The notes under the pieces: generated by a model
What the model was told of the DNA's origin: nothing
The model's input: the letters and a program-made list of their open reading frames with translations, nothing else
The model's database searches: none
Shown here: piece after piece, positions 600 to 22,663 of the stretch
Layout of the letters: the number at the start of each line of letters is the position of its first letter
How positions within the stretch are numbered: the first letter of the stretch is position 1
Origin: Klebsormidium nitens
Taxonomy: Eukaryota > Plantae > Klebsormidiophyceae
Assembly (NCBI GenBank): GCA_000708835.1
Contig: DF237649.1
Location: 1-42,482, forward strand
Direction: 5' to 3'
DNA: 42,482 nucleotides
Made by a program: the position numbers and the translations under genes

Positions 600-3500
600 A
601 TGACGCGGAATGAAGTATCTGAGTTTGCCGGCTTTCGTATTGGCGGAGAGGTTCACCGAACATCGCACTCGGTGGTCTTTCGGGCCTTGCGCGAGGACGG
701 TAATACCTGGGTGGTCCTGAAGACTGTGCCGGCAGCGGTTACGTCCCCTGCAGCACGAGCACGGCTGCATAGAGAATATGACATCACCAAAGATTTGCAG
801 GTGAGAAGGAAGGTTTCAGTTTCCTGGGAGCTGATGCGGTGCAGCTCAAGAGCAACAAGAAGCACAATTTCCTAAAACGGGACCACCTTAGCGTTGCTGT
901 TATCTTCACTAGTTGATTGCCAGTCATCACAGATTACCCAGTTCACTGAAACTTCATGTGCGTGAGGACTTTCTTCTATGTAAGAATTTTCGAGCCTTCT
1001 CATTCTGCGCGCTGCGCTGTTTGCATTCCTGCAATCATATCGCTGGTTTGTGGATCGTGATCTGACTGCCGCAAGGTAATTGAGCTCTTAGTGTTGAAGG
1101 CCCGAAGTCTGACAACTTGTAGTCCAGCAAAACTGGGTTTGCTAAGATCTCTAGGGAGTACTTTCACATGCATTCCCTCGTCGTCCTCAGGAGTGTCCGT
1201 ATATTGCGCGTCCGATTGAAGTGGTGGAATATGCCGGACGAACGGCCTTGGTCCTGGAAGACCTGGGAGCCACATCGCTAAAGGCGTATGTCAAGGGAGC
1301 CAAGCTGAGTGTGCATGACGTGTTGAAACTGGGAACGTGTATCGCCAGTGCGCTCGAGCACCTTCACAAGGCCGGCCTCATCCACCAAGATGTGAGGCGC
1401 TTCTTCTTTGGCGGTTTGTGGGGCCCATTTTGGTGTCCTGAATTTCTCAGCTGCTCACATTTCCAGAATTGCATCCTCAAACCCCAGGTGTGGCCAGGAG
1501 GTAGAACAAGGAGGCCCACATTTGAGTACACCTATAGATGTTAGTGCTCAACGTATGGATTGGCTTTCAATTGACCGCAAACTATGAAGCATCGGAGGCT
1601 GCGCCCTTGCAGGATTCTCAACGATTGGCCGGTTTGATGTAGAAATTACCTGTCTCAGCAGTAACATGTATATTCTGAGAGATCGAATGCGGCAGATCAA
1701 TCAACCTATCAATTGGAACCGAGCGGCACATCAGGTTGCTTCTGTTGGCTTTCTTCTGTCTACAGCATGCGTTGACTTACAATCAGTCTGACCGATATGT
1801 TCTCCGATAGCTATCGCAAGATGCACTCAAGCAAAGTCGAATAGAGGACTTCCTTCTGCTCCCCTTTGAGACATTTCAACAGCCGGCAACACATGTGAAT
1901 TACAGTCTTGCCTATTCCCAAGCAATCAAAGACTTTGGTAACCTTGATTGCTGATATAATTCCCACACTAACCTCTCAACCTGCCCTCAACGCTTCTTTT
2001 GAATCCTGAAACCCCTTGTTAATCCACAAAACCAAAAAGCCCTCAGCCAGTAACTTCAGAGTTCAGCAGTACATGAAACCCTCGTAGGCGGTCGTCCTCA
2101 AAAAGCGCTAAGCGGACTAGGGGCTGGCGTCTGCAATTCCGTCGATGCAGAAAACAATGTTTTAAGTGAATAATACGAAGACAGTGCTGGGATGGGTGGG
2201 GTCGGTTGGGTGGTTAGGGTGGGTGTAGGTGCGGGTGTGGAGCATGCAAGTCTTTGGTTTCGCGTCAGAGTCAGGTGAAGGCTTGTTGTTCACCGACCTT
2301 GTTGTCACTAAAGTAAACAAGTACGGATTGCAGGTAAAGCCAGCCAACGTGCTGGTCGTAGATCAGCTGGCGGCGATCAAGCTCACTGACTTCTCCATCT
2401 CGAGCCGGCTGACGGAAGAGAGCTCCATGCTCGTGCCCTCGGATGTAATGAAGGGGACTGCGGCATATATCAGCCCTGAGCAGGTACGGTGGTGTTCCTG
2501 CGTTTCTTCTGATGCTTTGGTTAATCGCAAGGGTACTGCGACGAAAGCCCAATTGAAGAGCTGGGCGCGGGCCAAGTGCAGACGAGTCTGGTACTGAGAA
2601 CGTGGCACTTCTCCAAGTTCTTGGAGTGGGCACGCTATGTCCTGAAATGCCAGCCACATCAGAGCTGTCTGTTCAAGGATTTGTTTGTTGATATGCTGGG
2701 ATGGAATCAACACGAATCAAAGTCCAAGTATCATTCAAGTTGCCTTCTTTTCACCACTTCAATGCGTGGTGCAAGCAGAGAAATTGTTTTGAGGCCCAAA
2801 GTTTAAGAAACCAGTCAGTGGATAAAATCTGTTTTGCAATGGTGCAGACACTGTTTCTACAGCTCTCAGGCTCCCTTTTCTCTGCGATTCGGGCCGGTTG
2901 GTCCAAAATGTTGCAGCAGCAGTCCAGGGTTCCGTTCCTTTTCCCACTAACCTTCGGCAAAAATCTACCTAGTCGCCATTTTCATCCGGGATCGAAAGAA
3001 CTTTCAGAAACGGTCCAAAAGCCTCAACGCTTGCTGTCCTGGACTAACGATCCGTTTGGCGACGTTCAGACGGGGCGCGTGAATCGGGCGGTGGACACGC
3101 GCACCGACCTCTACTCGTTGGGCGTGATGCTGTACGAGCTCCTGACGGAGCACCGCCCATTCCGCACCGAGGACTTGCAGCAGCTGTTGTACCAGCACAT
3201 CGCGGTGGTCCCGCAGGTATGCATGGTTGTGTGTGCCCACCCTCAGAGCAGCGATTCAAGGGTGAAAAGATTGGTGCTTTGAAGGTTACCAATTCCGTCC
3301 GACTTCTTTCATTGTGTTACCTTCTATTATGTGGCTTATGTGGGCGATTCGACCAAATCTAATGCTTTGACAGCGGCATGGACTCGCAGACAGAATCGGA
3401 GTTGGTTCTTCGCGCCAAGATTTGGGGTGCCTTCCATCCGGTATTATGAGGCAAGCTGGTATCTCAGAAGGGTTTGTCAAGTCAGGTTTTGACTGCAGGC

Positions 3501-3894
3501 ACTGTTGAAGCTAAGCGAGTCTATTGTCAGTGGCCATGTGTGTACGCCCGGATATGATGTCCCGGGCATCCTTTCTTGTTTGACATCCTGACCGCACGGG
3601 GTTCCACAAGTGATTGGCAGCACTTGCGGCAACTCACATGGACCCTCATTATGTTGGTTGATTGCCTAATGTCTTTTAGCTTCCGATTCACCCATGTCTT
3701 TGTGCAGCCTCCGACCGCAGTCGATCCTAGCGTCCCTCTTGCCGTGTCGCACATCGTGATGAAGCTGCTGGAAAAAGACGCGGAGGCGCGCTACCAGACG
3801 GCCGCGGGGTTGCGCGCGGACCTGCAGACCTGCCTGGACATGCTCGCGAAAGGAGACTTGCAGCCGTTTCCGTTGGGCAGGCTCGACCATGTCG
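600..3894 (+). other. Ser/Thr protein kinase domain of the hybrid kinase (exons 1-5)
   Basis: Subdomain motifs VVLKT (catalytic Lys), HREYDI (alphaC Glu), IHQD|[24 protein letters not shown]|[33 protein letters not shown]. No GxGxxG loop, which is typical of this bacterial-type kinase family. Confidence 0.92.
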
Positions 3895-21800: not shown

Positions 21801-22663
21801 ATGGATGTACAGGTACGTGCGACCGTAGTCGTGGTGGTTTTAGGGGTTTCAGGGTTTTCGGGTTTTCGGGTAACCCAATTCTATCTTCTGCCTTTTTTTG
21901 TTCCTTCATCAAGAGCTGCCTTGCATGCTTGCATACTAGGGGTCCAACTTACCTCGAATGGAAGGCGGACCCAACACCTAATGGCACTCGACGCCACAAA
22001 CGCTCACTGAGTTGGCGTATTGGCAACCGTTTGGAAGATTGAACGTTTCGAATCCTTTTAGCGGCGGCCTTTCGCTAGTACTGTTCACACTTAATATTTT
22101 GAAACGGTTTGAGAGAAATGAGGAACGATGCAATCGCAAAGGGGCCCGGTTTTTACACGCGTGCATCTCCTTGTAGATGCCTGTGTTGGACGGGTTACAA
22201 GCATCCCGGACTATCTGCGAGAGGTGGTCTCGAGAAGAACGGCCATTCCTGGTCGCAATGACAGCGAATGCAATGCAAGGGGATCGAGATCGATGCCTCG
22301 CTGCGGGGATGGTCGAATACATAAGGTGAGGTTTAGAAGGCCTAAAGAGCTTGCGCGATGGCCCACTGAGAGTTTGTGCGCATTCATTACGTGAGCTTTC
22401 ATCAAGACGCAACCCCATTGCCCAGGTAGTTGCTTTGCAAACATGATTGTTGTGGACACGCATTGGTCAGAGACACGGCAACCCAGGGTTCAAACGCAGG
22501 GTGACTCGTTGCTCCTCACGTATATACAAACTTATTCTTAACTCTAAGTCGTCCCGTCTTGTTGATCTGCAGTAAGCCTGTCCGAATTGAGGAGCTCAGA
22601 AGGGTGTTGGACGCACAAGCAATCGTGGTAGGCACCAGGGCCAAGCTGCATCCAACGAGTTGA
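600..22663 (+). CDS. Hybrid Ser/Thr kinase - STAND(AAA_16) NTPase - TPR-like - GAF - histidine kinase - double receiver protein (HstK / fungal Chk1-Mak-like), 32 exons, ~2087 aa
   Basis: Manual GT-AG exon chain: 600-800, 1191-1391, 2334-2483, 3070-3216, 3708-3894, 4271-4521, 5458-5636, 6599-6941, 7511-7617, 8330-8504, 9098-9247, 9919-10114, 10690-10845, 11736-11854, 12419-12907, 13568-13788, 14233-14361, 14946-15131, 15676-15841, 16217-16940, 17527-17657, 17981-18059, 18339-18478, 18887-19093, 19350-19461, 19735-19865, 20217-20477, 20755-20898, 21194-21397, 21675-21812, 22177-22325, 22573-22663. Sum 6264 nt = 2088 codons; all junction phases match; TGA at 22661-22663. Motifs: VVLK, HQDVKPAN, TDFS, YISPEQTGR, DLYSLG; [33 protein letters not shown]; SVLCMPI...GVLYVE...IENS (GAF); [33 protein letters not shown]; AEDN, LMDVQMP, AMTANA, SKPV. 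The start ATG at 600 is uncertain: an acceptor-like ttgcag at 574-579 allows an extra upstream exon. Confidence 0.93.
3990..4310 (+). repeat. Three tandem copies of the exon-6 acceptor region (two decayed, one functional)
   Basis: gccgcctatgtgtcccagaccgcatcctcgggcgcg at 4104 vs functional gccggctacgtgccccagaccgcatcctcgggcgcg at 4271, with matching upstream intron ccaagct[t/c]caaagaca; a shorter gccggctacgcgcattctcggacgc copy lies at 3990. Confidence 0.85.
5080..6215 (+). repeat. Decayed copies of exon 7 on both sides (5' copies at 5114 and 5274; 3' copies at ~5850-5970 and ~6124-6215)
   Basis: tacgcag|ggagtgctaaagcagg... and cgg|agtttactgaagcagg... vs tacgcag|ggtttgctgaagcagg; gcagaggc at 5626, 5911 and 6192; gcgctgggcca at 5569 and 6135. 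Confidence 0.85.
8427..8770 (+). repeat. ~171-bp tandem duplication spanning the 3' half of exon 10 and its donor
   Basis: acgcgctccgtgct...ctcacgctcatcactca..ggtgagaag at 8427 and 8598; the intron part tgtgcacgatcgag is also repeated. Confidence 0.9.
10800..11010 (+). repeat. 147-bp-offset copy of the exon-13 3' end and donor
   Basis: gcgctggagatccaagcggaagaggcggagtgcctttcgcttacag|gtgagcc (10800) vs gcgctggagctccaagaggacaaggccgagtgcgtatcgctgacag|gtgggcc (10947). Confidence 0.85.
11487..11750 (+). repeat. 134-bp tandem duplication upstream of the exon-14 acceptor
   Basis: gaggatctgacacaa at 11495 and 11629; caccaaacg[c/t]t..cgac.cctg in both copies. Confidence 0.8.
12928..12967 (-). repeat. 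Degenerate (CCCTAAAA)5 telomere-like tract
   Basis: 8-bp periodic cccaaaaa tcctaaaa ttccaaga ccctagaa tcctataa. Confidence 0.55.
16217..22663 (+). other. GAF - HisKA - HATPase_c - pseudo-receiver - receiver output module (exons 20-32)
   Basis: GAF: [11 protein letters not shown]...[11 protein letters not shown]...[11 protein letters not shown]...PQSVLCMPI...GVLYVEH...AF...[16 protein letters not shown]-box [23 protein letters not shown]; N-box; G1 DTGIG; F-box [18 protein letters not shown]; G2 GTGLGL. The terminal receiver has ED, phospho-Asp, Thr and Lys intact. Confidence 0.93.
21838..21870 (+). repeat. Degenerate (TTTTAGGG)4 telomere-like tract
   Basis: ttttaggg g tttcaggg ttttcggg ttttcggg in intron 30. 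Confidence 0.65.

Follow-up and report, generated by a model that had tools for sequence, protein, structure and literature searches.

Hybrid histidine kinases that begin with a serine/threonine kinase (STK) or a domain related to it have been described from fungi and from cyanobacteria. In fungal group X, Candida albicans Chk1 (CaChk1) joins S_TKc, AAA-16 and GAF domains to a histidine kinase (HK) core, Mak2 and Mak3 of Schizosaccharomyces pombe are peroxide sensors of the same build, and deletion of S_TKc together with AAA-16 from CaChk1 gives a phenotype (PMC9069115). The cyanobacterial "dual protein kinases" of family III (cbSTKIII), among them HstK (Alr2258), consist of an N-terminal STK, GAF and a C-terminal HK (PMC2176072). 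For the green lineage, Kabbara et al., surveying 67 eukaryotes, listed 67 histidine kinases for Klebsormidium nitens and in 2018 reported KniteHK20, KniteHK56 and KniteHK59 as the first of the fungal group X type in green organisms, a type reported for none of the land plants surveyed; they called group X polyphyletic and its fungal N-terminal domain "kinase-related", and proposed a link between the K. nitens enzymes and oxidant stress on land (PMC6324907). Here, we analyzed a stretch of 42,482 nucleotides of K. nitens DNA (contig DF237649.1, hereafter the window), and are confident that it carries one intact, transcribed gene from the nucleus of a streptophyte alga of the Klebsormidium type, whose product is a soluble "dual" sensor kinase of 2087 aa in this group X/STK-GAF-HK family.

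The gene is most likely one of KniteHK20, KniteHK56 and KniteHK59. An earlier sequence-only reading of the window had implied that such a kinase was new; as the protein type is already published for Klebsormidium (PMC6324907), that implication falls, and the gene is sound but not new. It documents, in a streptophyte alga, an arm of two-component signaling of which there is as yet no report from the surveyed land plants; the fungal relatives of the gene have been connected with peroxide sensing and morphogenesis. To this our analysis adds a transcript-backed exon model, a pseudo-receiver common to the 4 best-scoring retrieved bacterial homologs, purifying selection, and an often-retained intron.

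The exon chain was rebuilt independently of the earlier model, by combining Pfam matches on pieces of the window with homolog comparison and a search for splice junctions. The window has a GC content of about 52% and lacks long bacterial-style open reading frames (ORFs); instead, a series of stop-free segments runs along the forward strand from 528 to 22660. A search of 1.84 billion representative proteins with the exon 15 piece returned both exon-sized fragments (52–75% identity) and proteins of 1700–2200 aa (about 30%). The fragments led to intron-rich loci on JGI metagenome contigs, L001/L002 (about 70% amino acid identity) and L003 (about 60%), while a search with exon 20 led to L005, a locus in a Logan assembly that is 80–93% identical in nucleotides across most exons and whose introns cannot be aligned. 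Compared in translation, L002 and L003 marked out 32 conserved coding blocks in the window, and the search for frame-keeping GT-AG junctions left a single clear best choice for almost all introns; the last, intron 31, was placed by eye. The result is a gene on the forward strand at 600..22663 with 32 exons, 31 introns (all GT-AG) and a coding sequence of 6264 nt, which reads from an ATG at 600, a position conserved in L002 and L003, to a stop codon at 22661–22663 with no internal stop (Table 1). Span, exon count, coding length and protein length are the same as those of the complete, frame-consistent gene that the sequence-only reading had put forward.

RNA, which that reading had named as the check on its exon chain, agrees with the model as far as it reaches. 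The stretch 13500–19499 is present in 20 public runs of unrecorded library type from 8 studies, as spliced contigs, and we compared this stretch of 6000 nt with the contigs of 4 runs from 4 studies (X1, X2, X9 and X15), all without a single mismatch to the window. Nine joints coincide exactly with predicted junctions 16 to 24 (13788|14233, 14361|14946, 15131|15676, 15841|16217, 16940|17527, 17657|17981, 18059|18339, 18478|18887 and 19093|19350), and 2 further junctions (12907|13568 and 19461|19735) are fitted by loose contig ends, which include the final bases of exon 15 on one side and the opening 28 bases of exon 26 on the other. These joints also settle an ambiguity in the acceptor of exon 22, which is 17981 and not 17951. 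One spliced contig of 5869 nt in X15 reaches from 3507 nt upstream of exon 16 to exon 24, and contigs of X1 and X9 extend 3590 and 3470 nt upstream of exon 16. Since exons 1–15 hold 3051 nt of predicted coding sequence, the 5′ leader would measure about 420–540 nt; and because the spliced contig spans the 5′ part up to exon 24, a single RNA carries the kinase, NTPase, helical, GAF and HisKA parts.

The domain order of the product is Pkinase, AAA_16, a long stretch of TPR_CHK1-like helices, GAF, HisKA, HATPase_c, a degenerate receiver and a canonical receiver. Pfam finds Pkinase on 3 stop-free pieces between 1155 and 3279, AAA_16 on pieces 4207–4572 and 6486–7130 (both above the cut-off of 32.6 bits), HisKA on piece 18110–18544, HATPase_c on piece 19614–20129 (40.4 bits) and Response_reg on pieces 21519–22007 and 22177–22326. 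TPR_CHK1 (PF25503) has no Pfam match on the exon pieces of the window; the region aligns colinearly with the PF25503 match of the bacterial homolog P0007 (35.4 bits, with a cut-off of 27 bits), but PF25503 stays below the cut-off in the homologs P0005 and P0006. The NTPase-helical region had no sequence match among solved structures, and a feature search of the ESM Atlas returned only vague TPR and diatom-fragment clusters. No HPt domain is present in the product, whose C-terminus lies about 30 residues past the second receiver.

The sequence-only reading had noted two receivers and the retention of key catalytic residues; this stands for every domain but the first receiver. The kinase keeps K41, E59, D134 (in H132-Q-D134, HQD), K136, N139, D153 (in D153-F-S155, DFS) and SPE; the NTPase has a Walker A motif GYSGIGKT (334–341), a Walker B motif LFLDD (460–464) and EGNPFY (560–565); and the histidine kinase motifs are intact, with H1567, N1684 in the N box, DTGIGI (G1), an F box and GGTGLGL (G2). 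The window, L001/L002 and L003 all conserve these motifs. The second receiver (aa ~1955–2075) is canonical, with E1962-D1963, D2006, T2037 and K2059. In the first (aa ~1800–1925), which hhalign aligns to a receiver profile with a probability of 88.5% (E 2.7e-6), D1857 and K1905 are kept, and A1811-R1812 occupy the position of the metal-binding acidic pair. We therefore consider it a pseudo-receiver with a probably receiver-like fold. The acidic pair is also lost in L001 and L003 and in the 4 best-scoring bacterial homologs retrieved, P0239, P0263, P0269 and P0274 (the last from a Thiotrichaceae metagenome-assembled genome), while other bacterial homologs have a normal DD. In line with the earlier claim of a protein without obvious signal peptide or transmembrane segment, a Kyte-Doolittle profile of the product shows no N-terminal hydrophobic segment; its single hydrophobic helix (1153–1171, value 2.14) lies inside the conserved helical repeat region, where it is more likely to be buried than to span a membrane.

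This architecture is that of the two described systems, as the sequence-only reading had recognized: the domains match the published descriptions of both (PMC9069115, PMC2176072). With fungal group X the protein shares a hybrid HK core, an N-terminal Ser/Thr kinase-related domain and a GAF domain between the two, in the same topology of kinase-related domain, AAA-16, GAF, HisKA/HATPase_c and receiver within a large soluble protein (PMC9069115, PMC6324907). Its 2087 aa fall short of the 2471 aa of Chk1, in which the kinase domain starts only at residue 435, and it differs in having a pseudo-receiver before the true receiver. With cbSTKIII and HstK it shares the combination, within a single polypeptide, of an N-terminal STK, at least 1 GAF and a C-terminal histidine kinase. 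Bacterial STK-AAA_16-TPR_CHK1-GAF-HK proteins, cbSTKIII included, are colinear with it over more than 2000 residues at 31–35% identity and share SPE and GYSGIGK[ST]; P0239, P0263, P0269 and P0274 even have the same degenerate first receiver, true second receiver and absence of HPt. Many other bacterial members add PAS or HPt or swap the HK for GGDEF or a cyclase, whereas the algal gene is nuclear, with 31 spliceosomal introns. In the kinase loop, the usual non-RD form among the bacterial proteins is HKD (49 of 92 homologs; DFG occurs in 38, DFS in 8 and SPE in 68), whereas the variants listed as commonest for these homologs do not include the algal HQD. The Walker A and B (hhhhDD) motifs, the GxP-like EGNPFY and a putative long stretch of C-terminal helical repeats match those of STAND NTPases of the MalT/AAA_16 type. 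What sets the algal protein apart from these is its effectors, a protein kinase at the N-terminus and a histidine kinase at the C-terminus. The land-plant classes (CHASE, ethylene receptor, AHK1, CKI1 and AHK5), from which the sequence-only reading had rightly set the protein apart, have sensor domains or N-terminal membrane segments that it lacks: no exon piece gave a Pfam match to CHASE, ethylene-binding or other land-plant sensor domains.

That the locus encodes one protein is further borne out by its colinearity with bacterial homologs. In blastp, the product matches P0007 in one high-scoring segment pair (residues 11–2078 against 9–2047, 32% identity, 945 bits), and similar end-to-end matches were obtained with P0239, P0263, P0190 and others; in tblastn, 5 long bacterial homologs are colinear with the window from 630 to 22323. 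P0007 itself comprises Pkinase, AAA_16, TPR_CHK1, GAF, HisKA, HATPase_c, 2 receivers and HPt. The gene is under purifying selection, with dN/dS values of 0.17 against L005, 0.18 against L002 and 0.15 against L003.

By analogy with its family, the protein could work as follows. The NTPase and the helical region would form a nucleotide-dependent switch, GAF would act as a ligand or redox sensor, and the two together would set the autophosphorylation of H1567. From H1567 the phosphoryl group would then be transferred to D2006 in the second receiver, and a separate HPt protein would relay it to response regulators. The first receiver would serve as a non-phosphorylatable structural or regulatory module, and the N-terminal non-RD kinase might provide a second output or autoregulation.

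Several points weigh against this picture of a complete dual sensor kinase. With HQD and DFS in place of HRD and DFG, kinase activity cannot be assumed. The Pfam match to GAF on piece 16190–17002 is below the gathering score (E 0.0017), although the region is colinear with strong GAF domains of P0007 and P0006, and the first receiver gave no hit in Pfam or in phmmer against the retrieved proteins. For junctions 1–14 and 26–31 the evidence is conservation and splice consensus, as the reads covered 6 kb only. Finally, a large share of the transcripts retain intron 19, and the HK half would be missing from their product.

This last point bears on 2 different explanations. In the 4 runs, intron 19 is retained far more than any other intron of the covered stretch: the contig depths, which are rough figures, are about 230 spliced to 275 retained in X1, 315 to 79 in X2, 49 to 71 in X9 and 0 to 59 in X15, while contigs inside the other introns do not exceed a depth of 14. 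Read-through leads to a stop at 15893–15895, 17 codons after residue 1251, and to a 1268-aa product without GAF, histidine kinase and receivers. Retention could hence be a regulated switch between the full sensor and a kinase-STAND-helical protein, and the variation of the retained share between studies would fit such a role. Nevertheless, the weak donor (GTTTCG) is not conserved (GTAAGA in L005, GTAAGC in L003, GTCAGC in L002), no conserved sequence element was found inside intron 19 in comparison with the homologs, and the retained form, with its premature stop, may simply be degraded. We therefore read the retention as inefficient splicing rather than a conserved switch, and think a regulated switch improbable. 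The early stop, together with read coverage of only 6 kb, could also be taken to mean that the locus consists of 2 or more genes, for example kinase-STAND and GAF-HK-REC, whose single frame is an artifact of exon chaining. This is very hard to reconcile with introns of 247–962 nt that leave no intergenic-sized gap, with a spliced contig that crosses from the 5′ part into exon 24 and loose ends that continue into exon 26, with bacterial proteins that align from end to end, and with an exon chain kept in L001/L002, L003 and L005; we give it very little credence.

As to the origin of the sequence, all full-length relatives retrieved are bacterial, at 31–35% identity, which might suggest bacterial contamination or a very recent transfer rather than a resident algal gene. 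Both readings are refuted by the spliced transcripts; in addition, the gene has 31 spliceosomal introns, GC content differs between exons (0.61) and introns (0.50), the neighbors are eukaryotic genes (an NDUFAF7-type methyltransferase and an EIPR1 beta-propeller), and at least 3 diverged homologs bear introns, so that we regard this explanation as next to impossible. More credible, if still doubtful, is that the N-terminal kinase lacks catalytic activity, serving as a regulatory or scaffold domain, and that the protein signals through the His-Asp relay only. The HQD and DFS variants and the term "kinase-related" for the fungal domain (PMC6324907) speak for it. On the other hand, selection acts on K41, E59, D134, N139 and D153, every one of which is retained, forms without HRD and with DFS belong to the family (HKD being the commonest, with DFG or DFS, among the 92 bacterial homologs), and removal of S_TKc and AAA-16 from CaChk1 has consequences, though these do not prove catalysis (PMC9069115).

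For the history of the gene, we inferred a FastTree phylogeny from the first ~1540 residues of 3 algal sequences and 92 bacterial representatives; it took in algal and bacterial sequences only. The algal sequences form a clade (support 1.0) on a long branch, whose nearest neighbor is P0062 (locus L004), a bacterial protein with GGDEF output and a bacterial gene neighborhood. Among 30 protein clusters looked up, all 11 that name an organism are bacterial, and a word-index search with a profile of P0007 and exons 1–8 of the window likewise found no named eukaryote, all named hits being bacterial. Neither this search nor word-index searches with exon 20 and with a 268-aa ORF further along the window returned a protein at 100% identity, and the latter two named no eukaryote either. 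Most intron positions are common to the homologs; intron 4 (3217–3707) is absent in L002 and L003, while L002 also lacks intron 8 (6942–7510) and carries an additional intron within exon 2 (L002 1410–1672). Intron 4 shows no obvious target-site duplication or second copy in the window. We tentatively propose, as a possibility and no stronger, that the algal genes derive from a complete bacterial gene, including pseudo-receiver and receiver, that entered the Klebsormidium lineage independently of the fungi and was then intronized to 31 introns. If true, "group X" in the green lineage would be a matter of shared topology, not of shared eukaryotic ancestry, and the intron gains and losses between homologs and the exon-edge repeats described below would be intronization that can still be seen.

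Separately, introns 5, 6, 7, 10 and 13 contain decayed direct copies (60–90% identity) of the adjoining exon edge, splice site included, mostly spaced by 147–174 nt. A direct-repeat search detected these copies, which Tandem Repeats Finder missed. On the bacterial side, P0062, P0019 and P0014 combine the kinase-AAA_16-helical-GAF chassis with GGDEF or a class 3 cyclase in place of a histidine kinase; the sensor half acts like a module whose outputs can be exchanged.

Table 1. Coordinates of the kinase gene, exon-edge repeats and neighboring genes in the window.
Feature	Position	Strand	Content	Evidence
Exon 1	600..800	+	aa 1-67, start codon, kinase N-lobe, K41, E59	ATG position in L002/L003, conserved block, junction search
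Exon 2	1191..1391	+	aa 68-134, kinase, terminal HQD (D134)	Pfam Pkinase, conserved block, junction search
Exon 3	2334..2483	+	aa 135-184, K136, N139, DFS (D153), SPE	Pfam Pkinase, motif conservation
Exon 4	3070..3216	+	aa 185-233, kinase C-lobe	Pfam Pkinase; following intron absent in L002, L003
Exon 5	3708..3894	+	aa 234-296, end of kinase domain	conserved block, junction search
Exon 6	4271..4521	+	aa 296-379, AAA_16, Walker A GYSGIGKT	Pfam AAA_16 44.9 bits
Exon 7	5458..5636	+	aa 380-439, AAA_16 middle	tblastn, conserved block, junction search
Exon 8	6599..6941	+	aa 439-553, Walker B LFLDD	Pfam AAA_16 38.6 bits
Exon 9	7511..7617	+	aa 554-589, TEGNPFY (GxP-like) motif	conserved block, junction search, motif conservation
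Exon 10	8330..8504	+	aa 589-647, helical region	conserved block, junction search
Exon 11	9098..9247	+	aa 648-697	conserved block, junction search
Exon 12	9919..10114	+	aa 698-763	conserved block, junction search
Exon 13	10690..10845	+	aa 763-815	conserved block, junction search
Exon 14	11736..11854	+	aa 815-854	conserved block, junction search
Exon 15	12419..12907	+	aa 855-1017, helical sensor region	protein search, conserved block; RNA loose end
Exon 16	13568..13788	+	aa 1018-1091	RNA joint
Exon 17	14233..14361	+	aa 1091-1134	RNA joints
Exon 18	14946..15131	+	aa 1134-1196	RNA joints
Exon 19	15676..15841	+	aa 1196-1251	RNA joints
Intron 19	15842..16216	+	375 nt, weak donor GTTTCG, often retained	RNA contigs
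Exon 20	16217..16940	+	aa 1252-1493, last helices, low-complexity linker, GAF	Pfam GAF E 0.0017; RNA joints
Exon 21	17527..17657	+	aa 1493-1536, GAF end	RNA joints
Exon 22	17981..18059	+	aa 1537-1563, linker helix	RNA joints
Exon 23	18339..18478	+	aa 1563-1609, HisKA, H1567	Pfam HisKA 58.8 bits; RNA joints
Exon 24	18887..19093	+	aa 1610-1678	RNA joints
Exon 25	19350..19461	+	aa 1679-1716, N box (N1684)	RNA joint
Exon 26	19735..19865	+	aa 1716-1759, G1, F, G2 boxes	Pfam HATPase_c; RNA loose end
Exon 27	20217..20477	+	aa 1760-1846, HATPase_c end, first receiver (REC1) start, A1811-R1812 at acidic-pair position	conserved block, junction search, profile comparison
Exon 28	20755..20898	+	aa 1847-1894, REC1, D1857	profile comparison
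Exon 29	21194..21397	+	aa 1895-1962, REC1 K1905, linker, second receiver (REC2) start	conserved block, profile comparison
Exon 30	21675..21812	+	aa 1963-2008, REC2, D2006	Pfam Response_reg
Exon 31	22177..22325	+	aa 2009-2058, REC2, T2037	Pfam Response_reg
Exon 32	22573..22663	+	aa 2058-2087 and stop, REC2 K2059	junction by eye, assembled model, motif conservation
Exon-edge copy	4081-4139 vs 4248-4306		direct repeat	
Exon-edge copies	5159-5211 and 5329-5381 vs 5503-5555		direct repeat	
Exon-edge copy	5558-5638 vs 6124-6204		direct repeat	
Exon-edge copy	8423-8512 vs 8594-8683		direct repeat; copy 8594-8683 retains GTGAG donor	
Exon-edge copy	10800-10867 vs 10947-11014		direct repeat	
NDUFAF7-type gene	26069-32484	+	multi-exon; Methyltransf_28 piece 30382-31014; likely mitochondrial presequence exon ~26069-26731	Pfam Methyltransf_28
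268-aa ORF	33971-34774	-		
EIPR1-type gene	39617-41076	-	beta-propeller exons	PF23609

Downstream of the kinase gene, the window holds the 2 eukaryotic genes named above and, between them, an ORF of 268 aa without a Pfam domain. Relatives of this ORF include 3 paralogs at 46–53% identity, each on a Logan contig of 24,913 nt (probably one and the same contig), and a fourth, more distant match that carries PF12937 (F-box-like).

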